A stretch of DNA of 64,000 nucleotides, taken from contig JBLDXI010000001.1 of assembly GCA_047495785.1 (NCBI GenBank), positions 3,968,001 to 4,032,000 of the forward strand, given 5' to 3'. Shown here piece by piece: positions 3,881 to 58,304 of the stretch (position 1 is the first letter of the stretch; every line of letters begins with the position of its first letter). The position numbers were made by a program, and so were the translations under genes. The stretch is from Lepidodermella squamata. Taxonomy: Eukaryota; Animalia; Gastrotricha. A model generated the notes under the pieces. The model saw only the letters and a program-made list of their open reading frames with translations, did not search any database and had not been told where the DNA came from.

Positions 3881-6110
3881 ATGATAAACCGTCGATTGTC
3901 CAACTACTATTCTAAGAATTTGCTCAATCTCGCGGCTTTCTCAGCATTGGCGGTATGTCTGGCGCTGTTCCTCCACACCGTCCTTGTTTTCAGTCCGCAA
4001 TCCCTCATGCTGATTATGACGGACTCCTCCGAAAATCACGTGTGTCATCTACCGCGACTTGACCCATGGGACCCGACTGTTATGCCGTATGTCTTCAAAA
4101 TGGCACCTCTAAACTGCCCACCAGCGAGCGATTTAGTCGAAATCACCCAAGACACGACAACTGGAGATTTACTGCTAGTCTCAAACCGTGGTAATTTGAC
4201 TTGTCAGTATCGGACGGCGAAACGGGGCCAAGATGACAACACTTTAATATATTCGAACTATTTTGTTATTAATGCGTTCCCGTTCAAATCTTGGCCATCA
4301 GGGGCTGAGTTCTTAGAAGTTACATGCTACCAGCCTAACACTCCAGCTTCTGTGTTATACTCAAATGTATTTACGAAAATTCTTCCTAGTCAAGCAATGC
4401 CTAGTCAAGCGAATGGAAATGCGTGGAATGTGCTTATTGTTGGCATTGATTCTGTGTCTCGCCTCAATTTTGCGAGATCACTGCCGAAATCTCTCGATAA
4501 ACTGAAAAAGCGGGGCGCGATATTTATGAATGGCTACAACAAAGTTGGGGAGAACACATTCCCGAATCTAGTCGCGATTCTCACAGGTCAGCGGGTTGAA
4601 TTAATGCCAGGAGAAAAATTTCCAGCTGAACTGCCACATGACGGCACGAATGGCGAAATTTTTGACGACTACCCGTTTATTTGGAAGAAATTCAAAGACG
4701 CAGGCTATGCTACTGAATATGCGGAAGACATGCCGAGGATTGGGACATTCCAATGGCAGAAAAATGGCTTTCGAGAACAGCCCACCGATCACTATGGCCG
4801 GACTCTATTAATGACCATGGAAAAGCTGCATCCTCTTGATGCGTATCTCAACCCTTTCCTACAGTTATTTGAGGCGAAGAATGTCCAACTCACCGCATCG
4901 CCAAGTTTATGTTTCCAAGGTAGAAAGAAGCATGAAATATTCTGGGACTATGCTGTCAAACAGTTTGTGAGAGCTTATAATCCGAAGAACCAGCCGAACA
5001 GAACGAGGCCGTTTTTCGGTTTAACCTGGCTCAGCGAGCCGAGTCACGATCACGTCAACATCGTCTCGATCTGTGACCAAGATCTAGCCTCATTGCTGGA
5101 CTGGCTAAATGAAGATAACATCAGGAAAAGAACTTTCGTTTTCGTAATGTCTGACCATGGAGCAAGATTTGATAAGTAAGACATTCCGGAAATCATTGCC
5201 GTAACATGAACATTTCTTTTTCAGCATACGAAATACTGTGGTAGGTCGGATTGAAGATCGGACGCCCTTCTTCTCAGCATTAGTTCCTGATGAGTTCCGT
5301 AAGAAATATCCTGAGCTTGTGGCCAATTTACAGAGAAATTCTGACCGTTTAACCACCCCGTTGGACTTTCATCAAACATTACAACACATTTTACATCTTT
5401 CCAAGAATCCTTACGATAGAACCGGTAAGCTGATGGATCCCCATCTTATACATTTTCCTTATCTATTTCACGTAGAGTTTCCTCGCATCTATTACGGCGA
5501 TAAGTATCGATGGGCAGCAAGTTTGCTGAGCGAAACCTTGCCACAAACCAGGTCATGCTGGCAGGCTAATATTCCTGAGCCTTATTGCGCATGTTACAAA
5601 GAGACGCCTGTTTCAGATCCAGGCAATGACAAGCACGTGTTGAGCGCGGCTCATTTCATTGTGCAGAGCATCAATTTTGATCTCAATTCGAAGTATCAGC
5701 CACCTGATGTCAACTTCACGGACACGGAATCGCGTTGCTCTCGTTTCAGTCTGGCGAGCGTCGAGTCTGCTAGTCACGTGGGCGCGACAAGAAGCGTTAT
5801 TAACGACATGCAACGATCGTTTATTGGCGGATGGCTCGAACCTAGCCGGCAAATCAGGCGAGTTCTGGCTCAGGCGGCTAAGAATAGCTCTGATTACGTC
5901 GTCGTAGTACGAGCTGAGCCGGGTGGGGCCTTGTTCGAGGCGCATGTTGCACCGAGCCTGGAACAACAGCAATCATCCGCCTTAATAAAAAAACGAAGCA
6001 ACTCTCCGTGGTCTATAATAGGCGAAATACAGCGCATAAATGCATACGGCAATCAATCTTGGTGCATAAGCGGCTCATCGGCGGCTAAAAAATTCTGCTA
6101 TTGCACCTGA
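3881..6110 (+). CDS. DUF229-family (alkaline phosphatase/sulfatase-like superfamily) type II membrane protein, 2 exons (3881-5175, 5225-6110)
   Basis: N-terminal TM; family motifs NVLIVGIDSVSR, GYNKVGENTFPNL, SDHGARF, GRIEDRTP, LTTPLDFHQTL, RSCWQANIPEPYCAC, RINAYGNQSWC, KKFCYC; 49-nt GT-AG intron keeps frame. Confidence 0.92.
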
Positions 6111-6554
6111 TGAGAAAAAATGCAGTTAGATTACATTTAGTTTTTAATTATCCAGCAGATCTTTCAAGTAACGTCACATGCAATAAAAAATGAATAACGA
6201 AGCCAATCTTGGATTTTTAACTAAGCTTTATTCAGATCGATTTTTCAGGCAAAATTTGTGTTTATATATTTTTTAAATTTTTTTGATACGCCGCTTGTTT
6301 TGAGCCCCCGATTAAATCACGAGGTAGGTGCATTGTAGCTATAGCGACGCGGCTCACAACTATAAATAAAGCGAACGAACGTGTTGGCATGTCTACGAAT
6401 AAACACAATACTTGTGCTGCTTTATATTGACTCGTATCAATTTCTGTTGTGAAAAAACGTATCGACTTTTTCTTTCATCGTTAAAAAAGCCCACTTGATG
6501 CTAGTCGTAAATCAGGGGACAAACAAGCGTTTTTAGGGTTTAATTCGCGTTTTA

Positions 6555-8318
6555 ATGACAGCCGTTCATCCTGCGCCCTTTCCTGAGGACGCGGATGATG
6601 CGGTTTTTGTTGAGAGTTCAACTATTGAAGAGTCAGCAGTCATCGTTCATCCAGAGCCGAGGAAGGAGAAAACTCCAACTCCTCCAGCCCTTGAGCAGCA
6701 TAAAGAAGCTTTTGTCATTGATGCAGCTACCTCACCGAATCGTCCTGATGAAACGCAGACACCTCATAACCACAACAATTCAGTTTCACCTTTGGTTGAA
6801 ACAGTTACTGCTCAGCCTCATTCCGATCTCCATTCGGGTGGAACTCGTACAATCAACGAGCCTTATGAAGACACTGAGGCATTCAGATCGCCCCTTCATT
6901 CCCCAAGAACTTCGATAGCGATAGTTACGCAACAGCCTACTCCATCTGCATCTCAACCAGCGTCAACGATCATGCCACCAGCCCGGCCTTACCCAGCTCC
7001 TCATTTACATTCGAACCACATCGGCCACAGTAAGCCACCTAGCGTGATTTCATCAGAGATGCCGCCATCAAGGTCGCCTAGCCAGATAGGGAAGACGTTC
7101 AAAGACCATAACAACCCATTTGTTGGGAAGAGTAACCACAATCAAGCCGCCAGTACTGTTGTAAGTAACTGCGGTGATACTCAGTACTTTGGCACCGTCT
7201 ATGGAGACACGGAAATCGTAGATAACGAAGGCACAATCGACGGCGGCGATTATTCGACGACGATCCTCCGCGAAAGACGGGAACCTATCATGACAGACAG
7301 TATGATGAACGTGGCACCGAATGTTAGAGCTAAGGATGATCATAATGGGGATCGCCCTGGAGACGGCCTAGAAGCGCTGCAGAATGTGGTCAAGATCTAC
7401 CTCCATCGGATTGGGATTTGGGAATGCGACTGTAAGGGTGGAAAGTGGGCTGTTTACGATGGATTGACAAATGAACAGTTATACTATGCTAAGGAGAATG
7501 CTGGATGCTGCGGGTTATGTCGGCTTTCAGTAATGTCCCTAGTAGACTCAAATAATCAAAACGTGAGCTTAGATTTGCCGTAGACTTTTCAGATCGTTTG
7601 AATAATTTGAATTTCAGGAAGTTATGCGAATCGTTAGGCCTTGTAGGTGCCTTTTCCCTTATCAGCGTTGCTTTCTGTGTTGCTACGGCTGTTCTTGCTC
7701 CCGAGAGTGGCAAGACTCGATACAGGTCGAAGCTCCGCCCGGTTTCACAATAAGTCACGTTGTCGAACGCGCTTTCTGCCAAAATTTGCCCTATTACGAG
7801 ATTCAAGACTCAAACAAACGACCTCTACTCATCGTCGGCAAACCCCAACGCACGTGTACAGCTTTTACCTCTTGCCACAAATGCTCAGTCCAGTGTCAAA
7901 ATACGCTATGCGACCTTGCATGTTGTAGTGATGTAACAGGGATGTTCGGGATTCATCACACAGCTGTGCGACAGGCTTCTCGGGAGGTTATCGCATCTCG
8001 CCATAGCTATAACCGCCCGCCGATCCAGCCAAGGTTGTCGATCGACTCAGATCGATGCATCGGCCAAATCAGCAAGAAATGGGCGTTTAGGTTACGATGT
8101 GTTAGCGGCAACGACTATGAAATCAACTGTGAGTGCTAGATGGTTTGAAAATTGATGATGATTCATTCCATACATTTTCACAGTTCCGGTGGATCTTAAC
8201 CCCAGGGTGAAGGCATCACTGCTTTGTACCGCAATTTTTATTGTAAGTTCAATATTTACTTGCTGCCTAAAAATAACCATTACCTAATTTATAGAACTCA
8301 GCGCTGTACTGGGATTAA
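6555..8318 (+). CDS. Phospholipid scramblase-family protein with long Pro/Ser-rich N-terminus, 4 exons (6555-7562, 7618-8128, 8184-8242, 8295-8318)
   Basis: QLYYAKE, EVMRIVRPCRC, Cys-rich palmitoylation stretch, IQVEAPPG, IGQISKKW and FPVDLNPRVKASLLCTAIFI match the scramblase (PLSCR) pattern; splice phases are consistent. Confidence 0.88.
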
Positions 8319-9101
8319 ACGGCCAACGCAAAATACTCCGAATTTAGCTCGAACTACCTCAGTGACTCGTCCCGGAGATAAATTGACCGAATATATAGTT
8401 CAAAAAAATAACCTACAATTTCGTTCCATGTTAAATGTTATTCTTTAGCCGCAGTGCTCAGAAAACTGTTGACAGGTGGTCGAATGCTTTAACTTTAATT
8501 ATTGTACAAAAAGTTTTAAAATTTTCATGTTTTTCGGCATTAAAGTGAAAATCTTGTCACCGCGGATGTGTTATTAATTATATTGTTTGTACTTTGAATG
8601 ACGAGTTAATAGTTCAAAAAGTCCATAATTTCGGTCATACGCAAGGGTTATTTACTGTGCAGTGAAATGGTAAACAAGCGGAATCGAACATCACTAAGGA
8701 TTAACAAAATTGATGCGTCTGCACTATGTCTAATGAGACTAATTGCCTAGCAAGCTGATTTGATTTCCTGATTTTTTATCGGGAACAAATCAGACTTTCT
8801 AGTAATTTGAAAGTCTGCTTTTCAAAGGCGTGGCCCTAGCGCTGTACAATGTGTCGTGCAATTATCATCAGAGACTGCATGGATCGCGCCCCACGCCCCA
8901 CGCAACGGAACTTGCTATAGCGATTATTCAAATTATCACCTGTCAAAAGCAATCATGTGACAAGAGGGTTTATTTATGATTGTATGCTTGATTTACAGTT
9001 AATAGTAATCTTCAATTGATAATGGGCAATATGGGCAAAACGTGGGCATTTTTCCCGAACTGTTCACTGTAAGTTTTAATTAAATGTTCAGTTTATAGGG
9101 G

Positions 9102-9108
9102 TATATAA
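9102..9108 (+). promoter_or_regulatory. TATA box upstream of the small secreted gene
   Basis: TATATAA about 55 nt upstream of ATG 9163. Confidence 0.45.
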
Positions 9109-9162
9109 TAGGCTAAAATGGTGAAGAAGTTGATCAGTTGACAATACTATTTCTCAGCGATA

Positions 9163-9643
9163 ATGGCAGCCAGGTTCTGCTTCCTTGTTACTTTTGCTGT
9201 TTCTATTGCAACATCAACGCTTGCGAACATAGCTGAGCCAAAATCGAAGCCAGCCGAACTCAATGGTCCTTCATCTTCCCGTATGCTAACATCAGGTATA
9301 AAACCTAACACTTTAAATGTTTATCATCTTGCTTATTCCAATATTGTTATTTTTAGGCCAAAGATCCGAATTTCAAATGATGGTGAGGGAGAGAAAAATG
9401 CGAATTCTGGGTCAATTATTGCGAGGAGCCCGTGAGCGGACTTTACAGCAACTTCGCCTGAAAAAGTGCTTGGATTTATTGAGATCGCGAAACCTTTGTG
9501 CGAACAAAGTCACTTTTTACGTTTGGGCGCAGCGGCTTGCGCGGAACATTATGGACGGCAAGCTAGACGGAACACTAGGGCTGCCTAAATCAAACGATAC
9601 CTTACGGATACGCTCAGTTAAACGGATATTTCCCTCTCAATAG
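9163..9643 (+). CDS. Small basic secreted protein, 139 aa, 2 exons (9163-9295, 9357-9643)
   Basis: Signal peptide MAARFCFLVTFAVSIATSTLA; a phase-1 61-nt intron joins ORFs 9163 and 9317; AATAAA near 9678; R/K/L-rich helix with two Cys. Confidence 0.7.
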
Positions 9644-9796
9644 TTTTCAAATTTTGATTTTACTTGACAATACGTTCAATAAAAGCTTTACTAAAACAAT
9701 GCAGCTCGCAATTAATTTTACGCAATTTTAACACGTCCAAAGAGGTGTCGGAGAATGAAAATTGGTCAAAATTTGACAGATGAGCTTGGTCAAAAT

Positions 9797-11215
9797 ATGC
9801 CTTTATTCGCTTGTATTATTCTGTTTAGTCTGTGTTTTCACCCTGTCAATTCGTTTGAGTATTCAGAGGAGGCTTTTATTCCGAGGTACAGCCGTCAAAA
9901 AGCGACAGGTCGTCGTTTTATTGATAGCGGAGACAATTACGACTACCCAGAAAATGATGCAAGCGGTGACCGCGATTTTGTTATTGATATATCCATCGAA
10001 AGTCGCGATAGCAGAGAACGAGATCAACCCGAGGAGACGTACGACGATGACTTAGAAGAGACAATTCGGCAACTGCTGAAAATTCGGCACCAGGGCGGAC
10101 ACCATCGGAAGACAAAACGTGGTATGAGAGGCGTTGTTAGCCAACTATTACGGGACCATGAGTTCATAAGACCTGCTTCCGTGCTCATGTACAACAACCC
10201 TCCGCCCTCTACGACATACGTATCAAGCTCAATGGAAATTCCTTACCAAGAATCGAGACTACGACCGTCTCTTCCTCGGCCTTTACAAGGTCAGGATCCG
10301 CCAGAGCAACTTTCGTCTATAAATAACGGTCTTATGCTGGTACCAAAGACATTGTTACCTGATCAGCCGGTTCATAAATTGTCGGTTATGGGGCGGCCCG
10401 TGAATCCTCTGTTAATTAACCATGTCACGCTGAGATGTCAACATTTGAACTGGAACGTCGCGCCCGGAATATACGCATGTTGCGGACAATCTGTTTATCG
10501 GATAGAATCTGAGCAGTGTTCACCTGGAGACAGGGTTGAGAAACGAAGATATGAAAATAATAAATCGAGTACTGAAACATCAACTCTGGGACCTGTGCAG
10601 ATTCTCACGTGCAAATCTAGACGCTTCAGCATCCCGCAGTATGATGCAGAATTTTATGGTTCGTTTTTGTAGATTTGTTCATAATATTGTATTAAACATA
10701 CTTTCCAGCGTGTTGCAATGATCGGGTATATTTTTGGCCGAAAGAAGAGTGTAAAAATGGCGTGGTAACTGGCGAACATCCGTCAACTCATTTCAAGACC
10801 ACACCTGGTCCAGTGAAGACAGCATCCGTTCTTCTAATGTGTGAAGGTATCCCTCATTGGATTGATGCTCGCCTGAAGCGCTTTTACGGTATGAAGTCGT
10901 CAAAATTTTCTCATCCAATAATTTCTGATGCCATCAGGCTGCTGCGACGCTCGGCCAATCGACACAAGACGGGAGCTATGTAAACAGAGCGATGTATCCA
11001 ATCAAAACGTGGATCCGCCGAACTCAGGAACCAGCCATAAAGACAGGTGCCCGGATGGTTATTTGTGCTGTCACCCCTTTTCGCCGGTTTTAATCAACTC
11101 AGCTCGGACCTTGCGATGCTGTGGAGATATGGGCCCTTACGATGTTGAGAAAGCTGCGTGTCTTCATTCTCAGATTGTCAGGAAGCGTGCGACAGGTCAT
11201 GTTTACCACAAGTGA
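9797..11215 (+). CDS. Secreted galaxin-like di-cysteine repeat protein 1, 3 exons (9797-10658, 10709-10888, 10938-11215)
   Basis: Signal peptide; acidic region; RKTKR processing-type site; three C-x13-17-CC-x11-C modules plus terminal CPDGYLCC...CC..GPYD...C module. Confidence 0.85.
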
Positions 11216-11828
11216 TCAAAGAAAAATAGCACTGCAAATCCTGCTCAAAATGACTATAAACTGACTCCCAGCTGTGATGTTTTCCCACCAAAAGATGCAG
11301 CTATCCCTCCTTCTTTCCGCCCTATAAGCATGAGATGAATGATGATTTCAGCTTTCATTTTTTTCTCGCTGGTCTTGAAGTAAGTCAGCACGCGTTTTTC
11401 CACTTGTAGTTATAGTTATGTATTTATGACACGTGGCGTGGAAGAATTTCGCTAATAGCCGGAATAACCGCAGGCCAAGTCTATTGTTACATGACTTTTC
11501 TCTCATTAGGCCTAAATACAGTCCTTTTACATTTAGCTTGTGAATGAGTTGCGAGTGATAATGTAACACCATGCAGTCTGCTGCGCATGGTGTCTTTACT
11601 TGAAAACGAAGCGAAGATTACAATTTGTCACCAGGGGCTCTCGCTAAAAAAGTTGATGTTGAAAGTTGATAATTTTTTAATAAACGTGCGATGGAATAAA
11701 GTGCCGGTTTTCTCGTTTTGCGCTAATTGCCCACGGCAGCTTTACAAGAGCAATTTTATTGCCTCTCAAATCAAGCAGTTCGGCTTATACATACAATGCG
11801 AATTACATGCCAAGAATGTGCTACGGCA

Positions 11829-13585
11829 ATGATGTTTACAGTTGCCTTTCTAATCCTCGCACTTAACCTCTCAGGAACAGGTATGGCGGATGTTTTCTTA
11901 TTGCTTTCCGATCCATCATCACTTTCAACAGAGGCTGTAAGACGAGGCTCGAAGAAACTTCATGAAAGGCGCAACCCAGAAATCCGAATCCGTCGAAGGC
12001 GGCCGACCACACCACGCCTGGACTTCACACCTCAAGAGCTAACAATGGAGGATGACGATCCTCTACCTTCGAAGTCGAGTTATCCTGAATCAAGAGGGAG
12101 CTCTGGAAGAGGTCGCAAAATTAGATTGCGCTTCCACGTTGGACAGAGGCCTTCGCAAAGACGAGTTAAATCCGCATCTTACTCATATCAAGATGCTCAT
12201 CCTCCTCATCTAATACACCATAATCATCCGGGTTCAGAAATGCAGCATTCGCAATCGTCGGTCGTACCGACATTGCCCTTTTACTTCCACAATCCTTTCA
12301 CGCCTCCTAGATCGGATCAGAGCTACGTGCCGAACATATTGAAAGTACCCGGGCCTTTCGCGAACCTCAGTTTAAACATTCCAAACTTTGAAAATCAACC
12401 TAATATTGAAATACCTGCCCTACCTAACATGGAAACAGGTCCCGCAATACCTTTTACAGGTAAAATTGCTTCGGAAACCTTTGAAATGGTCCATCCATCG
12501 GCTCCTAAGGTTCAAACCCTTGGATCTCAGCATGGATATAGCCCTTTTAATAGAGTTTTACAAGTTGAGCCCAGGGAACCCTACCAGCCAATTAGGTCTG
12601 AGGCTGGACCTTCACCAGCTTTGAACAACAAAAGCCCGAGGGTAGTTATGCAACAAAGGTTCATGAGCAGACTTCCCGCTCCAAGATTAGCGCTTAGCGC
12701 AAAGCATGCAAGCGATCTCCTTAATAAAGAAATTCTGAACTGCAACGGCAAGAAATGGGAACTCCCAAAGAACACGTTCGCCTGTTGTGGGCAAGCGGTA
12801 TATCGCTTGGACGCTGAACATTGCTCGCCTGAGGAGAACAACCTGGTTGTCAGGGCAACGCCGGCAGCGTCCATGACAACGCAAATGCCAACAGTGGAGT
12901 TTCAATGTGAAGGTGTCAGATTTGTGATACCAAGGTTCGATGCGGCTAGTTACGCTTGTTGTGGCCGCGAGTTGTACTTCTGGCCGACTCAGAAATGCAC
13001 CAACTCTAGAGTATGGCCGCCGAGACCGACTTCTTTTGTCCAACTTCACCATGCTAAGCGAGCTTCAACTATCGTCAGTTGCGGTGGTAAGGATTGTCAA
13101 TAATTTTCATCACATGAAAACTTCAGCACTTTGTTTCATTTCTTTATAGATTTGAAATTTAAAATTTGATAATTTAATTTCAATAAAAATTTAAAATTTA
13201 AGATAATTTAATTAATGAAAAAAGAATAATTTAATAGTTCATATTTAATAGCTTATATTTTCTTTGGAATGATTTTCCAGGTAAGGAACACTGGGTCGAG
13301 CCCTCTTTGCGCCAATATTCAGGCTGCTGCGGCGAGGATTTGATTGACAATCGAAATGATACCTGCTCTAAATTGGCTCATCGAAAGCGTAAAGCGATGC
13401 AAATAAGACCAAGCTCCAATCAGCCTCAAATGACCACGAAATGTCCCGATCGTTATCTGTGCTGCGAAGACTATTCACCCGTCCTAAATGAGGATAACTC
13501 TATGCAATGCTGTCCCAAAAATGGACCGAGACCTATAAACACATTTTGTCCAGATTATTTGCCAACTTTTCGAAGAAAAATCTGA
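11829..13585 (+). CDS. Secreted galaxin-like protein 2, 2 exons (11829-13086, 13281-13585); alternative start 11796
   Basis: Signal peptide MMFTVAFLILALNLSGTGMA; R/H/P-rich N-terminus; modules CNGKKW..FACCGQAVY, CEGVRF..YACCG..YFWP, CGGKEHW..GCCG, CPDRYLCC..CCPKNGP. Confidence 0.85.
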
Positions 13586-14273
13586 TGAAAAATCGTTCAA
13601 GCCTTCAAATAGACGCAATCACTTGTTTACTATTACTTTATATCTGTAGTAAATCAAATCGTGTGAAAAATAAAATTGATCAATTTGATATAAAATCGAA
13701 GTAGCTAGTCATTTTTAATCGCAATCTTTGAAATTTTCCCATAATTTCACAAATTAAACTGAGTCAGGAATTAAGCGCTTCCGCAATCATTTAGTCACCT
13801 TGAAGGGTCTCTTTCTGACGCGGAATCGTAAATATCATCAAAAAGCAACGCTGTCTGCTAAAATTGTTCAGAGGCTTATAAGCTGCTGATAAACAAAGCG
13901 GTGGTCTAATGGCAGTGGCTGGGTGTTCATGCGTCAGCTTTGTTTTTATATAGCTCAGCTTTTCACGAGTTGTGTGTAAAACACTGACGGCGCGCGCTTT
14001 CCACTACTACACTACAAATAGGTAACAATTAATAACAGAGCGCGTAAAATAATTATTTCCGCATATATACATTTATAGCCGCTTTCTGGTATAATGCGAA
14101 AATAATACGTACCTTATTCATTATTATCAGGAATGGGATAAAAATCTCCATTACTATAAACCGCTCTCAGTATACAGGTATGACGGGTATCATGCTGCTA
14201 CTAAAGGATATCTTTCATTAGACCTATTTGTGCTAATTAGGACAAAAATAGCGGTACTCAACTACAAAAAAAA

Positions 14274-44198: not shown

Positions 44199-47100
44199 CT
44201 GGCGTGGATAGCTTCGTCGTCCGAGTCGTCGGTGCACAGCGCATCGGCGACGTCGAACCCGTTTTGGCCGGCGGTTTTCGAAGCGCCGCCGCTGCAGCCG
44301 GGCGCCTCGCCGCGCCACACGCTCGCGCACCTCCGCCACCAGGCATCGACGTCGAGTGGCGAATTTCTAGACGGCGGACCGTCGCCTGGCGGGCCCTCGC
44401 CGTCGAATTCAGCGTCTTGGCCGCAGCAAATCGACGCGGTTGAGTTGCAACAGCTTGATATTATCGGCTCAGGCGGGTGCGGGCTGGTTTTTCGCGGCCG
44501 ATGGGGCAGTAAATTGGTGGCGATTAAGCAGATAAACCAGGGCAGTTTGCAGGCGGGTGGCGCTGGGCCGGATGGCGTGTCGTATGCGATGTCGACTGAA
44601 GCGTGGCTGCAGAGGTTTTTCAACGAAGCTCAAACGATATGGATGGCTCGTGATCACCCTCATGTTGTTCAGGTTTGTATTTTCGATTTTTTGGAAATAA
44701 TGTACATCAATTAAGGCGAATTATGAAATTTTGAATTATATTTTTGAATTACAGGTATGATTAATTTCACCTTGTCAATTCGGATCATTTGGAAAATAGC
44801 CACTTTAAAATCAAATTTAAACAAAATTTCTGCAGCTGTTGCATAAACAGCTCTTTAAAAAGCCGAATTTATATTCGGATTTAACGATTAAAAATGCGCT
44901 GAAGTTGATAGAAAATTACTTTGAGAGAAATCCTCTTTTCTTGTGGCAATTTTCATGTGTTGCGTTTTTATTTTATTTCGATCTCATTTATGAAAATAGA
45001 AACTGCTTATCTGTTTCTAAGTCTGTCTTTTTTACCGCTTGGCCGCAGTCATTTTGATTTGCAATCAGCCAATAGTCTACTGAGAAAATTTGATTATCCT
45101 CGATTATCCCAGTTCTAGTTTTGCGTTATAGCATTACGGCCGACGCAGTTTTTCATCGACTCAGAAAGTAATTTCCTGAGTTGATTTATCAAATTCGATT
45201 CCTCTCCTACCGACCTGAAAAATAGCCCTATTCTTATTTTGCTGTTATATTTTAATGCGCGCTCGCGAATTCATGCAGTCGATATATATAAACCAATATA
45301 AAGTCATCAACTGCAATCAGAGACTAAGAATTCCAGCCGACTCGCTTGTCGCTTGTAGCTTACTGCATGGTTTTTTAACTCGCCTAGCATCGATCCAAAG
45401 CTCGTACTTGTGTCCGGTTTCGCTGTAGCGCGAAGACGCCTAGTAGAAAGATAAATATTGAAATGAAACTCGAGATTTCCGTTCAAATTACTTACCGTCA
45501 TCGTTGACTATTCAATCCAGATAGGAAACGTGATCTTGATGCGGGATGCGGCCTGGCACCTGGCTCAGAGCCATTTAATGCCGCGATAAAATTGCATCCA
45601 TCATTATATGACCCTGCACTTATGAATCAGAGGCAAAGATGAACGTGTTTGAATATGTAGGTCCTAAAGTAGCTTTGGAAATCCCTCAATTTAGTTAAGG
45701 AAAAACTATAAACTTGATGAGTAATCGTGAGTAATTTAACAGATTTCATGCGTAGCATTTTGGAATTTTATCATGATTTTATCGGTCTCCCAGGTATTCT
45801 TACAAAGCCACTCCTTAGGTGATTAATTCAACAAAATTTCGCCAATTTAACACCCAAACTTGCCGTGTGAGATTCCGGGAAGTAAGATTTGCCCTGAGAG
45901 CATGCTGAAATGTAAGAGCTCAGCAGAGGAAGATAACGCGGCCGAATTTCCATCGATAATCCAAGCAGCGAGTTGCTGTTGCCTCTCAGCAACTGCCATC
46001 GAACCAAGCTTCTCCAGGTAGCGAACGTGCTTGCAGACCACACCATTGCCACTACGTTCGCAATGATAAGGTTTATAAGACAAATCGGCGTAAAATGCAA
46101 AGAAGCACTCATGGTAGATGCTGAAAACTTGAATTAAATGCCTTATACCAGATGTGGTTAAGGTCGGTGAATGAAGGAACATTGACGATTCCCCAGTCGT
46201 GCCATTTCACGTACTCTATCGAGAAATTCTTCAGGCGCAGATATTTATCGCATCGGTGACTCGAAGCTGGTCGGCTTTTCGGCTCTCGTACATCAGCCAG
46301 ACCAACCGCTTCGATTCTTGCTTGATTGCTATTTAGGACCTGGCTCAGTATAGGTTATTGAAAAAACTTCTATATTCAGTGATCTGCAATGCGGTTTTGT
46401 GTCACACAGACACTGATATTTATTGTTAATATGCTGGGAACTGGGAAATTCGATTTTCTACATTCAAAAATTACGTGAGAAACCCTAACATTTCTTGTTA
46501 TTAGGCTCCAATTTTTATTATAATCTAGTTTAATCTAATTTTGTCCATTTTTGTTTTTAGTTGCTTGGAGTATGCCTTCAACGCTACTGGCTCGTTTTCG
46601 AATTTTGCGCCGGTGGCGGTCTCGATTTCGTCATCGCAAGGTGTCGCCTCGCCCCGGCTGTCATCGTCGAGTGGGCGACCCAAATCGCCTCGGGCATGGA
46701 ATGGCTGCACAGCGTCGGCATCATACATCGAGATTTAAAATGTATAAAATTAAAATTCAAAATTCATTTCTTAACAAATCCTAATTTTAATTTTTTAACA
46801 GCGTGCAATATTTTGTTGAAATACCCGCTTCCTCAGCTGCAAATGGCCGATGCAATATCAGAGACTGATCAGTGGCCGAACAGCGATGTTGGCGAGGAGT
46901 ATGGCGGCAATTTTTCGCCGAGTAACCCCGACACTTACCCGCCGGTTATTCTGAAAATCGCCGATTTCGGCCTCGCCAGGCAGTTGTCGCTCGACAAGTC
47001 ACGCGTGACGGCTAAATATGCCGAGGGAACGGTGCGCTACTTGGCGCCTGAGGTTATCACGAGTCGGACGTATTCGAAAGCGTCCGATGTTTGGGCGTAT

Positions 47101-50100
47101 GGCGTTGTCTTCTGGGAGTTGCTCACCGGAGAACAGCCGTATCGCGACGTTGAAGAGTGCGCGGTTATGTTCCGGGTCGGCAGGCAGCGGAGATCACTTC
47201 TACCTGTACCGCCATCATGCCCACCGGCATTCGCGTCATTACTGGTGAGTAAAAAATCGGAAGCATGAAATTGGATATCCAAAATGCATCATGATAAAAT
47301 CCAAATTTTTTGAAAATTATGATTACTATTTTGTTTTTTTTTCGGTAAAATTCGGGAATTGAAAATATATTAAAAAAACATAATTATTTTGAATTAAACA
47401 TTTTTCGATTTTTAGAATGATTGCTGGTCGAGTGATCCGTTTAATCGGCCGTCGTTTGCAGCTATCATCGATCGTCTTTCATTATCGGATTTACGCGTTG
47501 CTGAGTTCACGCGAACTGGCACTGAGTTTTCGTCACTGCAGGACAGTTGGCGGCAAATTATCGAGAGTAAGTTGCTCTGTTTCTCTTGAAAATTCAAAAG
47601 CTACGATATGTCCCTTAAGAAATGCTCCGAAAAGGGGTCCAAAAGTCTATAATGAGCGGCTAGGAAAATTCTAAATGCTTCCAAAAGCCATGAAAATGTT
47701 TATTATGTATGACTTTTATCAACGGAAAAAAACCCATTGGAATCTGATCAGCCGGGCAAAATACCAAACCAGTTACCATCGGGTTTTTCCTGGTTTTCTT
47801 CCGTTAATTAGTGAAATTTTAGGTTACAGTTTAGAGCAAGGAATAAATGAATTTTCTGCAGAAAATTGAACAAATAAAAATTAGAAAATGGGACATGTTT
47901 CCCTAATTATTTTGGTACTGATATAAATTGATATAAAAAATTCCAAAAGTTTTCAATGTCAGCACTGCATGATATTCTAGGTTGACTTGGGCTAATTAAA
48001 TCGCAATGTGGCTTCATAACACCGTCGTTATAAGTTTTTGCTCATTAGCCTGATCGGTCACAAGACCTTAATGATAAAAAAATCGGATTTTGACAGCTGT
48101 TTTTTAATTTTCTCATTAAAATTCGAGCATTTTGATGATGAATTTCTCTATTTTTTAAATGAACAGCATTTCATTTTTTCAAAGAAATTCAACATCTCCT
48201 TCAATTTTATTTGAAGCATTTTTGTGGTAATTTTAATTGCGTTCTAAAATTATTTGCTGTTTTCCAGATTCATTCAACGAGTTGAGAGTTCGGCAAGAAG
48301 AACTCGAGCTAGCTGATCTAGCCCTGCGAGAGCGAGCCGCCCAGCAGCAAATCATCGACAACCGACTACGGCAATGGGAGCGGCAACTAGCCCAACGAGA
48401 GTTGCGAGTCGTCGAGCGCGAACTCCGCACCCTGTTCATAGATGACGACAGGTGGCGCCACAGTTCAGCAGCTATGCATGGCACCCCGGATCGAAGACGG
48501 CGCCGGTCGTCCTCAGACACCCATTTCTCCCTCTCCTCATTCCTATCACCTCGCTCGAACCGGCTTCGACCGCCTCACCGCGTTTCTCTATCGCATTTGC
48601 GGCGGGATCGCAATTTGATAAGTCGCCCGTTGGTTTCGACTATGCACGTGTCGCATGTGGTGGCTCCGGGTGCTCCGGCGGGTGTCGCGGCCGGCGGCCG
48701 GGTGCTGCCGGCTATCATCACGACGGGCGTTGTCGAGCCGGGAAGTGAGGCATCGGTGATTCACCACCACCCGCATCGCCTGCACATGGCTGGGCCGAAC
48801 AACGAGCTGAACATACCGCATGCTCCGCCGCCGTCTCGGTCGTGGATTTCGTCTATGCCTGACATTCTTGCATCGCCGTCGTCACCTTCGAGAAAGGTTC
48901 GAATTGCCTCGAAATTCTGATTTTGTAATAGATCTTGAAAAAATTGGCTAACATTTTGATTTTGAGCTGGTCAAATGAACACTGCCGTCATTCAAATGCC
49001 GGTACTTATTGCGTATTCTGTAAAAACCTCGCTTATTTCCATTTTTCTTCAATTTTCTCCTTTTGGAAATATTTTGAAAAAAAATATTTCTTAATTTTAA
49101 TTTTTTCTCTATTTATATTTTAGGGTGCGAGGCCGTCGAGGGTGCGTCAAGCGTTGACCGGGGCGTCTCGCCTGCTGGCAGCCGTTTTATTAGGCCACGA
49201 CCCGGCTGGACCGAGGCCGCCGTCTATTCCACTAATTTCAACTGCTGTCGACAACGTTTCGCAAGGCTCATCGGCTGTTTTCGGACCAAGTCTGGCCGCC
49301 GATCGACTCATAGGTAAATTTGATGATAAAAAATTAGGTAGAATCGAATAACTGGAACGATGAAATGAGTTTCGTGAAAGAAAGATGTGGGCTATTCTGT
49401 CTGAAAATAATTCAAGCTGAAAAATTTAGATATTAAAGGAGTGGGAGATCTTTCACTTCATTTAAAATTTCAGATTTTTCTTTAAATTTATCATTTTAAT
49501 TTCGTTAATATTTTTAATTTTGATAAAAATTCATAATTTAAATGCGGTTTTTTCCATTTTTTCCAAGATTATGAAACTGGTTCACATATGGCCGAACCAA
49601 GCCCGGCTCCTCGTCATCGCTTCTCAGCCGATGACGTCCTTTCCGCACCCCTGCCTACTTCAAGCCGATTCCAGCAACCAATTATTCAACAAAACCAGCA
49701 ATTACAACAACTACAGCAACAAGCATCAAACCGGTTATTCTACATTGACGAATCGTTTTCAAAAAGCGTCGCCGCAACTCCGACCCCGGATACTGTTCAG
49801 ACCCCGATAGGCGGATCACTGCTTTCGAACCATAACCAACCTCATTTATCGCCTCCACCTCAATCAAGCGCCGTTCATCTGAGCCTGCCAGCGCCGTCTA
49901 ATAACAATAATAACAACAGTAACAACTTCATTTCTTTCGAAGACCAGCAAAATTCGGTGATGACTGCTCGAATCGGCTCAAGACCAGCATATCTGCCCTT
50001 CGCCCCGGCCAGAAATTCTATTTCAGCGGCGAATCCTGCTGGGCAAAATAAGATTTTGAACCAAGTACCGGCGCAGAGTACTGATTCGGGCATGGCGCTG

Positions 50101-53729: not shown

Positions 53730-54266
53730 TGTTGAAAAAAAGTGTGAGCTATAGGTAATGATGAATTCATGGTTTACATCTGGTTTATATGCTGCTCAAC
53801 TTGACGCATATCATGACCGCGACCTTAGCGATGGAGAAGCAAGGTATCCAATCTTTGTTTTAAACTAAAGCCGAGGCCAGTTCTGGGATATGTGTGGTTT
53901 ACAAAGCATCTTAAACGAGATCAGAAACAGAAGAAAGGCGAGCCCGTTTTACTAAAATTAAAAAGTAGAGAGAAACATATCGCTCAATGACCCAGCCCTC
54001 TTCCCGAGTAATACGGTTGACCGTGAGCTTCTTGCGTTGCCTTTTGTCACCGCTGCATACTGCATACTTAATAATAGTATATTTTTGTTGCTGGTTCAAA
54101 ATAACAACATAAAGGCAATTTCCTTTATTTTTTACATGATATCTATCAGGTTAGTTTTACGACTGTCAAAACATTTCACTCCAAGCACGTGATTTGACAA
54201 CGCTTAAGTTTAACAACATACACTCAAGAGCGCATCTTTAGTACACAAATCATCGTCACAAAGCTA

Positions 54267-55431
54267 TCATGTGCAATTGGCTTTGAAGACTATAGAAATC
54301 ATGAGCGCTGACATTGTCATGGCGTACAAGGATTGTCGGTTGTAGACGCTTTGGGCGCCTGAAGCGCCGCGCGTCCGCAGTAGCGCAGCCGTTGATTTAT
54401 AGCCGGCGTACATGGCCGTCGATAGAGCCGTCGCTCCTCGATTGTTTTTCGCTTCGATATTCGCGCACCGATCGAGCAGCAGCTCAACAACATCGGTGCG
54501 ACCCGCAAATGAGGCAGCTATCAAAGCAGTTGTACCGTCATTGTTACGTGCTTCGACCTAAAATATTGTTGAAATGAAATATGTGATCATAGTTTTCTAA
54601 GCTAGTTTTTGTTTTTAGTTTCATTCCCCCTTTTCAGGGGGTGAGCCGAATCCCGGAGGTACTGCAATACCGGGCCGACTCGTGGACGGGGTCCAGCAAG
54701 CTGGCTGCTCCCGCCCGGCTAGCCAAAAATAGGGCTAATATCGTAGGCCCCACATGGAGGCCGTTGTAGATATTAAACTACAAAGAACAGATACTACACT
54801 TTGATCATAGCCAAAAAGGCCGAGAAGCGATACTTTTTTGAAAAAAAATTTTTGACGGCGTTCTGGACTGAGAATCTCTTCGATTAGCACTGGCATTTGC
54901 ATATGCGCACCGTGCACTGGCTCATTAAGTGACGTTTGTAGTGTGAATAATCGCTAAGCTCCACCCACTGGCACGCGCACACTTAATATGATTCATAAGA
55001 TCGCGTGTCAGTGGTAGAACGCGCGCACTGACAAGTGATAAGCGGGTTTAAGCGTAATTTCGCACGCGCTTCCAGTTGAAATTTACCTTGGCTCGTGCGT
55101 CCAGTAGCATTTTGCAGGTTTCATAACGCCCAGCGAATGCGGCGACGATAAGCGGCGTTGACAGTTCAAAATTGCGCGCCTCAATATTTGCACCTTTGTC
55201 CAGCAGTAGTTTGGCAATAGCTGTATGTCCCAGGTAGCAGGCGAAAATCAACGGCGTCGCACCGCTGTTATCTCGCGCTTCGATATTGAGACCGCCCAGA
55301 TTCAACAAATTAGCTACCATATCGATTCGATTGTAGAAAATCGCCGTGAACAGCTCATCATCGTTTACCCCAGAAACTGTATGCAGCATTGCGACAATTG
55401 CTGCCGTCAAGATGATCGGGTAAAATCGCAT
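54267..55431 (-). CDS. Signal-peptide ankyrin-repeat protein A with GPI-like tail, 211 aa, 2 exons (55431-55087, 54557-54267)
   Basis: MRFYPIILTAAIVAMLHTVSG; about 5 ANK repeats (GATPLI.A..G..IAKLLLDKGANIEARN); RGASGA followed by a hydrophobic C-terminus; phase-0 intron. Confidence 0.88.
54639..54831 (-). ncRNA. U2: U2 spliceosomal snRNA, about 193 nt
   Basis: Minus strand reads ATCGCTTCTCGGCCTTTTTGGCTATGATCAAAGTGTAGTATCTGTTCTT; branch-recognition GTAGTA; stem IIa TGTAG-TTTAATAT-CTACA; Sm site ATTTTTG; stem IV CCCGGTATTGCAGTACCTCCGGG. Confidence 0.96.
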
Positions 55432-55697
55432 TTTATTTCTGAAACTAGTGTTGTGGTTTAAAAATGAATTTATGCCCTTGAAATTCTTTATTTACTTAAA
55501 GCTGATGTTCTTGATACCTGCGGCGTAAGATATTCGGTTTATTTTCAGTGTAAAACGCTCGTAAACACCGTGCAATAAACAATATCAGCCACTTGGGATA
55601 TTCGAAACGAGTACCATTTCACCTTGAAAACATTACTAATTCACTTTTACTCAGATTGCGTGCAGGTTAGGTTTGCGTATGAAATTTTTTTACAGCG

Positions 55698-56339
55698 TCC
55701 TAGTGATTCGACAAAGGTATTAGGGATTGGTGTGCCAATTATTAGGTTATTAGGTTTGCTTTTCGAAAGCTGATCGATTATCTCGAAAACAACACTTCTT
55801 CTACACTTTAGCCACTGTTACTGAAACCATGATTTTCGGTATTTTCAATGGCTTCCTACTAGCCAGAACCTATTGTCCGCCTTCATATTGGAATCCGACC
55901 GTTTCTGAAACTTTGTTTCGATACACCATGGTTGTGATCTCATCGTGTTGCTATTTGCTGAATGCAGGCTTTAGGGAAACCGAATTCGAATATGTAACTC
56001 GACGGCTGGAAAAGTAATCACGCTTATTTTCTATTGGGTTGAAAAATGCGAGTTATTACATTTTTCAGGCGCGCCGACAGCTATACATTTGGTGATTTTG
56101 CCCAAGAAGAATCGCAGACGATCGCGGCTGTGAATCTCGAAGGCGGCACATACAGCGGTCTCGTACGCCAACGGACAGTGGGCAATCTATCGACAGATAA
56201 TGGTTCTTCAACCGTCGAATCTACTCCATTAGTCACTGGATCAAATATTCATGTTGAAGAAGGACGGAGTGATTCGGCAGGAACCTTGAATTGCAATGAT
56301 GCTGAAATATCCGAGGAAATCGATTCAACGACAGGGTGA
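55698..56339 (+). CDS. Possible small membrane protein (partial model, about 3 exons)
   Basis: ORFs 55829..56017 and 56046..56339 are joinable by a short GT-AG intron; hydrophobic segments then an acidic tail; start not located. Confidence 0.4.
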
Positions 56340-56651
56340 TTGCCTTCCAACTTCGAATCTACCTATCGTTAGCGTCGTTGAATAACTAGGATTTAGGCTG
56401 GTTTACATCCGTTTCAAGGCGACGGGTGACAAGTAAAAAGTCTTTTGTTTTGCCTCTTCATTCACGTTAAAAAACTGGTGTTCAGCCTATTTTCTAGCGA
56501 TCAGGCACGCGACTGACGTGGCAAAGACGCGAAAAGTTAGTTTTATCATTATGTGTTACTATTTCCGGCACACTGTTACGGCGCGCAAGTCGCGCTATGT
56601 GGCCAAAACAAATTTTCATTGGCAAATCATTTTATTCGAAATTGGCGAAAA

Positions 56652-57275
56652 TCATAGTTGAGAAAAGAATATCAAGGCTAGGAATAAGCAGAATAGACTG
56701 ATTGCGTCATGATGTAGCAAACTAGACGCCCCAGAGGCGCCGCGACTCCTTAAATAATCAGCAGTGTCCTTAAAACCGGCCTTCCTCGCAACAGCCCAAG
56801 CTGTTTGCCCATCATAATTTTTCGCCTCAATCCTCGCTCCTCGATCTAAGAGTAACCGGCACGTATCCGACTGACCCGCTGCAGCAGCTGCTATCAACGC
56901 TGTATTGCCGTCCTTGTTAACAGCCTCTATTTGAGCCCCTTTAGCGGTTAGGGTATCACAAGCGTCAGTTCGACCAGCAGAGGCGGCTGCGATCAGCGCT
57001 GTAGACATGTCGTAACGCCTGGCCTCTAACTCAGCCCCACGTTCGATGAGCATATTCACGATTTTCGAATTGCCGACGATACTTGCGACAATCAAGGGCG
57101 TCGCGCCACCCGAGTCGCGTTGCTCCAGGTTGATTGCATCAGTTGCGAGTAAAGCTTGAACTCGGTCCACGTTGTTGTCGGTTATTGCTGAGAAAATATT
57201 ATCGCTTGTTGATTGGGAGGACGCAGAACCCAGGTAACACAAAAACAGCAGAAAAGATGTGATTAAAAGCGACAT
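56652..57275 (-). CDS. Signal-peptide ankyrin-repeat protein B with GPI-like tail, intronless CDS
   Basis: MSLLITSFLLFLCYLGSASS; about 5 ANK repeats; RGASGASSLLHHDAISLFCLFLALIFFSQL-stop. Confidence 0.88.
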   Translation of the reverse strand: MSLLITSFLLFLCYLGSASSQSTSDNIFSAITDNNVDRVQALLATDAINLEQRDSGGATPLIVASIVGNSKIVNMLIERGAELEARRYDMSTALIAAASAGRTDACDTLTAKGAQIEAVNKDGNTALIAAAAAGQSDTCRLLLDRGARIEAKNYDGQTAWAVARKAGFKDTADYLRSRGASGASSLLHHDAISLFCLFLALIFFSQL

Positions 57276-57671
57276 TGGCCATGCAGCAACTTCACAAACC
57301 ACCTCTAGATTACGCGAAGTACAACTTTCTTGATCAAATTTTAGAAAAATTCAGTTTACCTGTGGTATCAAATCTTGCCTGTCGTAGTATGCACCTACTG
57401 ATAGGTAAATAAATGACAAGAAACGCTGCTTTAGTTCAAGTCTTCATTGACGGCTACGCGAAACTTCGCTGCGTAGTCCATTCATCACTCAGCTACGTTG
57501 ACTGCCGTACTCTCTCATTCATTCATATTCATGCGTCTCCAGTATTGTGACAGAACATTCACACATGTATCTCGCCCTCAAATGAATGCAATAATCGCTC
57601 GATTATGACATATAACGTCGTATTTATTGAATATGTATAAATTGAGCGTATTTCATGAATGTAAAAATCGA

Positions 57672-58304
57672 TCAATGAGTCATGAACTCGAATATTGTTT
57701 GGACATCTGTAACAAAAGCAGTGGTACTTGCTGCTAGAATGAAGCTCAAAACCCGCGGAAGAATATGAGGCGCTCCAGACGCGCCGTGGATCAACAGCAT
57801 ATCGGCCATATCCAAGTACCCCAATCGTCTCGCAACCGCCCAAGCTGTATCTCCATCGTAACTCAACGCATTTGTATCCGCGTTAGAATCTAACAGAAAT
57901 TTGCTCGTCTCCAGTTTGCCGCCGTGGGCTGCTGCGATTAACGGTGTCCAACCGTCTCGATTTCTAGCTTCGATCGACGCTTTGAAATCGAGAAGGACAC
58001 GGCATACATCAGTGCGACCGGCGAATGCTGCGTTGATAAGGGCTGTGGATAGCGAGGTGTCCCTTGCTTCGATACTAGCACCGTGTTCCAGCAGCATTCT
58101 TACGATGTCAGTATACCCGAGGTAACTTGCGACTATCAGCGGAGTTGCGCCATTTACGTCACGAATTTCAGCGTCGTAGCCCGATTCCAGCAGGGTAGCA
58201 ACGTTTTCAAGCCGATTATTGTAAATCGCGACAAAAAGGTCGTCATTTGCTCCAACAGTATTAAGCAACGCTGCAATACTAAGTGTCACATATAATTCGC
58301 GCAT
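57672..58304 (-). CDS. Signal-peptide ankyrin-repeat protein C, intronless CDS
   Basis: MRELYVTLSIAALLNTVGA; about 5 ANK repeats; HGASGAPHILPRVLSFILAAS tail. Confidence 0.88.
   Translation of the reverse strand: MRELYVTLSIAALLNTVGANDDLFVAIYNNRLENVATLLESGYDAEIRDVNGATPLIVASYLGYTDIVRMLLEHGASIEARDTSLSTALINAAFAGRTDVCRVLLDFKASIEARNRDGWTPLIAAAHGGKLETSKFLLDSNADTNALSYDGDTAWAVARRLGYLDMADMLLIHGASGAPHILPRVLSFILAASTTAFVTDVQTIFEFMTH

Follow-up and report, generated by a model that had tools for sequence, protein, structure and literature searches.

Genes for small nuclear RNAs (snRNAs) that lie within the introns of other genes are known, as is the case of human RNU4ATAC in intron 2 of CLASP1 (PMC13484765). 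Introns also host snoRNAs, which are released from the spliced host intron. When 3' cleavage by Integrator fails, transcripts reading through snRNA genes become polyadenylated (PMC4349240). Introns themselves can be gained at an AGGT protosplice site, either by insertion of a transposon or introner or with filler DNA during break repair (PMC3443670, PMC4202315). Our literature search returned no report of an snRNA gene giving rise to an intron, nor of U2 genes in host introns.

The locus described here lies on the minus strand of a 64-kb window of Lepidodermella squamata DNA (the whole stretch that was analyzed, 64,000 nucleotides). It consists of a full-length U2 snRNA gene (54636..54831) placed in sense within the intron (54558..55086) of an ankyrin-repeat gene, gene A, which has two paralogs, B and C, in the same window. 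The reading that we favor, with a probability of about 0.7, is that of a working, independently transcribed U2 gene nested in sense inside a genuine spliceosomal intron of paralog A, with partial read-through. As for RNU4ATAC in CLASP1, a complete spliceosomal snRNA gene sits in a host intron and is apparently an expression unit of its own. In contrast to that case, the RNA is U2, i.e. a component of the major spliceosome, and its gene fills 37% of a short intron (at least 85% with its flanking signals); moreover the intron is present in one of three paralogs, and a read-through RNA reaches the last exon and the poly(A) site of the host. The parallel with failed Integrator cleavage is that a U2-initiated RNA passes the 3' signal and runs to a downstream poly(A) signal; here, however, the sample is an unperturbed public one, the poly(A) signal belongs to the nesting host, and the RNA is known from contigs alone. 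The sense orientation within an intron is shared with the snoRNAs, whereas transcription of this U2 appears to start at the 5' end of the U2 gene and not to include host exon 1. Finally, as in introns born by insertion at AGGT, the intron is paralog-specific, bears AG|GT on both sides and has a precise phase-0 junction, but no repeated or mobile unit and no donor were found here, the likeness to other loci ends at the U2 gene, and the change among the paralogs may be a gain or a loss. Nesting of this kind is uncommon but known; what is unusual is a major-spliceosome U2, in sense, filling most of a small paralog-specific intron, with a read-through RNA that uses the terminal exon and poly(A) site of the host. 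The locus contributes a case from an invertebrate, with the gene for a major-spliceosome snRNA lying in sense within a host intron.

The U2 gene was identified with cmscan. The match to Rfam RF00004 scores 159.4 bits, against a gathering score of 46 (E = 3.4e-33), and covers the model completely (1–192 of 192). It is the sole Rfam match in the 64 kb, and around the locus it was still the only real one at a permissive threshold. In the alignment the sequence is canonical: the branch-point recognition sequence GUAGUA, the Sm site AUUUUUG and stem-loops I, IIa, IIb, III and IV are all aligned to the consensus with high posterior probability. One-base insertions relative to this consensus are found in the loop of stem-loop I and immediately before GUGUAGUA. 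The original prediction had placed a complete sense-strand U2 at 54831-54639; this is borne out, with the 3' end shifted by 3 nt to 54636.

Four public runs were compared over positions 54000-55700 as Logan contigs, which cannot show true RNA ends or levels. One of them, X1, is probably DNA, since its contigs reach up to 130 kb and cover introns and intergenic parts evenly. High-depth X1 contigs over 54660-54761 and 54732-54791 show no difference from this U2 copy. A contig of run X3, labelled as a different organism (organism C), equals 54632-54832 without any mismatch, one-base insertions included. This U2 copy is a complete and apparently active gene. The summed depth in X1 is 4,000–14,000 over the U2 body and 87–101 over the intron and intergenic parts; from this depth there are many U2 copies in the genome, although summed depth is not equivalent to copy number. 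Seen as words, U2 is tens to more than 100 times deeper than its flanks in X1, and 105 contigs of varied identity are present at U2. Minority variants appear within U2 at 54706-54712, and one X1 contig jumps 91 nt inside U2 (from 54690 to 54782), which would correspond to an internally deleted U2 copy.

At the 3' side of U2 a terminal hairpin and an A-rich box (54609..54641, minus strand) together form a putative 3'-end processing signal. By folding, the hairpin has a CCCCC stem strand, a loop and a GGGGG strand at 54641-54626, and is followed by the A-rich box ATGAAACTAAAAAC at 54624-54611. Likeness to at least seven other contigs extends to 54609. The stem and the ATGAAA(A)C box are kept, with different loops, in organism C (X3) and in other U2 copies that X1 shows as loose ends. 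This is the pattern expected of a 3'-end signal under selection at independent loci, and a role in processing can be inferred from it.

Upstream of U2, the 255 nt that separate the gene from the 5' splice site (54832..55086) are a putative snRNA promoter or enhancer, proposed from motif enrichment. A search for repeats and motifs found, at 54887..54921, two copies of GCCAGTGC (at -90 and -63) on either side of an octamer, ATGCAAAT (at -71). The heptamer CCAGTGC occurs only twice in the 64 kb, both times upstream of this U2 (-89 and -62) and flanking the exact octamer, which itself has two occurrences in the window including this one. The pentamer CAGTG or CACTG is found five times in the 255-nt region, vs 1.28 times per kb in the window. 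In X1 the region has single-copy depth, and it has no second copy in the window. Judged by local motif enrichment, and not by comparison with a reference element for the taxon, the cluster is a candidate control region proper to U2. Another U2 copy, of which X1 provides 30 nt of upstream flank as a loose end, shares a single stretch with this one, GAACGCC, at -24..-18 there and at -32..-26 here. Either chance or a promoter element common to both copies, its spacing slipped, could explain the match. Where the spacing differs by 8 nt, the present copy has an A5-T8-C-A6 tract (54832-54863).

The host gene is read from the same strand. Exon 1 of gene A (55087..55431, 345 nt) extends from the ATG to the 5' splice site and encodes a hydrophobic N-terminus and ankyrin repeats; exon 2 (54267..54557, 291 nt including the stop) encodes ankyrin repeats, a GASGA motif and a hydrophobic tail. 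These assignments come from the open reading frame (ORF) and Pfam for exon 1, and from Pfam and codon conservation for exon 2. The intron, placed by colinearity with B and C, is a GT-AG intron in phase 0 (GTAAAT...TTTTAG) made of 255 nt upstream of U2, the 196 nt of U2 and 78 nt downstream. This agrees with the 529-nt intron predicted at the outset, for which about 255 nt before U2 and about 80 nt after it had been given. Paralogs B (56652..57275, minus strand) and C (57672..58304, minus strand) are each one uninterrupted ORF, and the four coding pieces (A exon 1, A exon 2, B and C) all match ankyrin families of Pfam. Joining the two exons of gene A yields a 211-aa protein that aligns with B and C with no gap across the junction, and B and C indeed lack an intron at this site, as first claimed. 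The junctions of gene A read CCAAG|GTAAAT and TTTTAG|GTCGAA, and at the equivalent site B has CAA|ATA and C has TCG|ATC. In all three paralogs (54267-58304) both termini are hydrophobic, the C-terminal one as a tail, and an RGASGA motif is conserved. The genome has further paralogs, two of them about 1.5 kb past the end of the window and others on other pieces.

Codon conservation of gene A is that of a coding sequence. Its exons compared with B and C are 52–72% identical at the second codon position and 24–33% at the third, values similar to those between B and C, and in both exons the order of conservation is second, first, then third position. No stop interrupts the 115 codons of exon 1 or the 96 of exon 2. 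We regard the intron as probably spliced because of the exact GT-AG borders, the phase 0, the gapless colinearity and the two intact exons; the evidence that it would be a genuine spliceosomal intron is strong, though indirect. GT and AG borders falling exactly at the point that restores both frame and colinearity would be a coincidence of about 1 in 256 absent selection for splicing. No joint between exon 1 and exon 2 (55087/54557) was present in any of the four public runs, in which the contigs cannot prove its absence. The length of 529 nt was also considered as an anomaly and this was rejected: short introns elsewhere in the window are 48 and 103 nt long, but the window also has an apparent intron of about 1.9 kb. 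The latter (44715-46560) lies between kinase-domain exons (ORFs 44232-44714 and 46561-47268). Within ORF 46561-47268 a short in-frame intron seems present after HRDLK.

Transcription was judged from run X2, which behaves as RNA because its U2-to-flank depth ratio is low (about 1.2–1.6, vs tens to more than 100 in X1), its longest contig is 6.9 kb and its cover ends sharply; we infer RNA from these features, the run record itself giving it as a guess. The contigs of X2 reach 54832, one base ahead of the U2 start. Over 54855-55700, i.e. the upstream part of the intron, exon 1 and the 5' flank, the cover is zero in this single contig set. A 573-nt contig, with one difference, is colinear with the window from 54675 to 54105 and runs through the interior of U2, the 3' box, the unspliced rest of the intron, the 3' splice site, exon 2 and the 3' UTR. 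It ends 19 nt past the AATAAA of gene A (54129-54124, minus strand), and this signal together with the RNA-like contig end at 54105 marks a putative poly(A) site of gene A. A low-depth contig of run X6 also links U2 with its downstream flank (54562-54744). The simplest account of these observations is transcription of U2 from its own start, with some transcripts reading through and being polyadenylated at the gene A site. A start at the first base of U2, independent of the host, holds only if X2 is RNA.

These contigs bear on two other readings of the locus. In the first, U2 would have no promoter of its own and would be processed from the host intron in the manner of intronic snoRNAs, with which its sense orientation within the intron agrees. 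Against this, the RNA-like contigs set in at the U2 5' end and none covers exon 1 or the intron ahead of U2, a motif cluster with an octamer lies upstream, and the 3' signal is common to U2 loci elsewhere. U2 also needs a cap, which is acquired at the start site of RNA polymerase II. We consider such processing highly improbable. Of the two modes of expression that the original prediction had left side by side, its own promoter is therefore favored, because X2 starts at the U2 5' end, and release from the host intron is not.

In the second, gene A would be dead or decoupled: the U2 unit would interrupt its coding sequence without being spliced, and exon 2 would be transcribed solely as the tail of U2 read-through. 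The zero cover of X2 on exon 1, and the fact that exon 2 is covered by a single contig that continues without a break into the intron and U2, are what one would then see. Absence from one contig set is nevertheless weak evidence, and a dead gene accounts poorly both for the GT and AG placed exactly at the colinearity point and for stop-free exons whose coding-type conservation resembles that of B vs C. This reading is thus very unlikely. For gene A, host splicing and even expression are predictions, exon 1 being absent from X2, the sole RNA-like run. Together with what falls outside these classes, the non-spliced and host-processed readings remain doubtful.

It had also been proposed that 3'-end formation at U2 might attenuate the host transcript. 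The opposite of attenuation was observed, with read-through from U2 extending across exon 2 of the host as far as its poly(A) site. In classic work on 3'-end formation of U1 and U2, use of the 3' box depends on a snRNA-type promoter, so host transcripts are not expected to be cut at the U2 3' box. Attenuation of the host transcript is thus less likely than promoter interference. The locus provides a natural case of snRNA read-through RNA borrowing the last exon and poly(A) site of a host, and is convenient for studying promoter-coupled choice of 3' ends and how a nested snRNA gene and its host interfere with each other.

In the favored reading of a nested, independently transcribed U2 gene, RNA polymerase II would start at the U2 5' end, driven by the upstream region of the gene with its GCCAGTGC pair and octamer. 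The U2 3' end would normally be formed at the conserved hairpin and A-rich box, as their conservation suggests. Some transcripts would miss this 3' signal and, with the remaining part of the intron unspliced, extend across exon 2 to the poly(A) signal of gene A, as seen in one RNA-like run. Transcripts from the gene A promoter would lose the whole U2 unit as a 529-nt intron, judging from the sequence. As to its origin, a U2 unit of roughly 430–460 nt would have settled in a pre-existing short intron of about 70–100 nt.

This two-step path had a competitor in the original prediction, in which a U2 cassette inserted into the coding sequence and became a new intron. The boundaries of likeness between U2 loci do not agree with a cassette that ends at the splice sites. 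In X1 the other U2 copies diverge from this one at 54832 on the 5' side and at 54637 or 54608 on the 3' side, i.e. at most 28 nt past U2, and the intron flanks beyond this likeness have single-copy depth. A blastn search for a copy or source of the intron flanks within the 64-kb window returned nothing beyond 15-nt chance matches, and X1 contains no intron-less allele of gene A. It is at the edges of U2, and not at the splice sites, that homology between U2 loci ends. No mobile cassette can be recognized in the U2 unit, and none of these data shows the intron to have been created by the U2 gene.

The AG|GT at both junctions, also pointed out initially, is there, but does not by itself indicate an insertion duplication, as it is automatic at any AG|GT exon junction. 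The AGGT shared by the two junctions amounts to four bases with no further extension, and border repeats such as AGGT must be compared with background (PMC3443670). More generally, AG|GT "duplications" at intron borders should not be taken for insertion scars unless a donor or an outgroup is at hand.

An intron born in one step can nonetheless be considered without a mobile cassette. An ankyrin coding sequence without introns would have captured, at an AG|GT, a complete U2 unit (control region, gene and 3' signals), e.g. during repair of a double-strand break. A duplicated or pre-existing AGGT and the AT-rich ends of the fragment would have supplied the splice signals, and the insert would have been spliced out ever since. 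Several features are in line with such a capture. The coding sequences of B and C are intronless at this site and everywhere else, AG|GT is present at both junctions, and the motif cluster reaches within 16–55 nt of the 5' splice site, so that nearly the whole intron could be U2 unit. Models of AGGT insertion and of break repair are established (PMC3443670), and an intronless ancestor is conceivable since the nearest relatives are intronless ankyrins of bacterial type. On the other side, the likeness between U2 loci stops at the U2 edges, the flanks are single copy and no donor locus is seen; the four shared bases follow from the AG|GT exon junction, X1 has no intronless allele, and the literature search found no paper describing such an event. 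Compared with arrival in an existing intron, the prior odds, roughly estimated, are about 1:4 against the capture. We therefore regard one-step birth, including its proposed source of splice signals, as unlikely. If it were true, it would be a clean and datable case of a captured functional gene becoming an intron, and the cargo would be unusual: the content of the intron would be the gene for an RNA that recognizes intron branch sites.

The two-step path, a U2 unit landing in an existing short intron, is the likeliest, somewhat above an even chance, and this estimate comes from prior odds and not from data: an intron is a far easier target than an exonic AGGT that is competent for splicing. 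A counterpoint is that only landing at an exonic AGGT guarantees a paralog-specific intron. Outside the putative U2 unit there remain 16–55 nt at the 5' end of the intron and about 50 nt at its 3' end. These leftover parts sum to an ordinary short intron for this window (48 and 103 nt), and thus two steps fit as well as one.

The direction of the change among the paralogs was also addressed. A, B and C form a star, with 51–54% identity in the core and saturated third codon positions. With this star, and with no orthologue found in the protein collection or the metagenome contigs, the intron may have been gained in A or, as the original prediction had also allowed, lost from B and C. Gene A is nearer to C in exon 1 (56% vs 43%) and nearer to B in exon 2 (62% vs 44%), and was considered as a chimera. 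This was rejected because, with three taxa, the pattern reduces to rate differences of B and C, the branch of A being about 0.26 in both halves.

Orthologues of the gene family were searched in a protein collection through a word index, with A exon 1 and paralog C as queries; none was found, the matches being generic ankyrins of at most 50% identity. The build composed of a signal peptide, GASGA and a hydrophobic tail was absent from the protein matches examined. A scan of metagenome contigs for orthologues gave only two distant GC-rich loci. The nearest relatives in the database are secreted, intronless ankyrin proteins of bacterial type (39–50% identity), and one protein match, P0001, sits in a bacterial gene context. 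A foreign origin of the ankyrin paralogs is conceivable, similarity between consensus-like ankyrin repeats being weak evidence for it.

The intron also contains a direct repeat of 8 nt, ATTTCAAC (minus strand), at 55075-55082 and 54568-54575, i.e. at +5..+12 and -18..-11 of the intron, the 3' copy being at the place expected of a branch site. The repeat was tried as a target duplication and rejected: excision between the copies leaves a 22-nt "intron", and several 8-nt repeats are expected by chance in 529 nt. It is probably a chance repeat.

Two odd contigs of X2 cover 54782-54832. In one, the U2 5' end runs into 40 unrelated letters; the second folds back at the U2 5' end, both strands carrying an identical 30-nt stretch. 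Chimeric U2 5'-end units could explain these contigs, as could a cDNA artefact where the RNA begins. Lastly, position 54134, in the 3' UTR of gene A, is A (plus strand) in the window and G in both X1 and X2, an allele or assembly difference.
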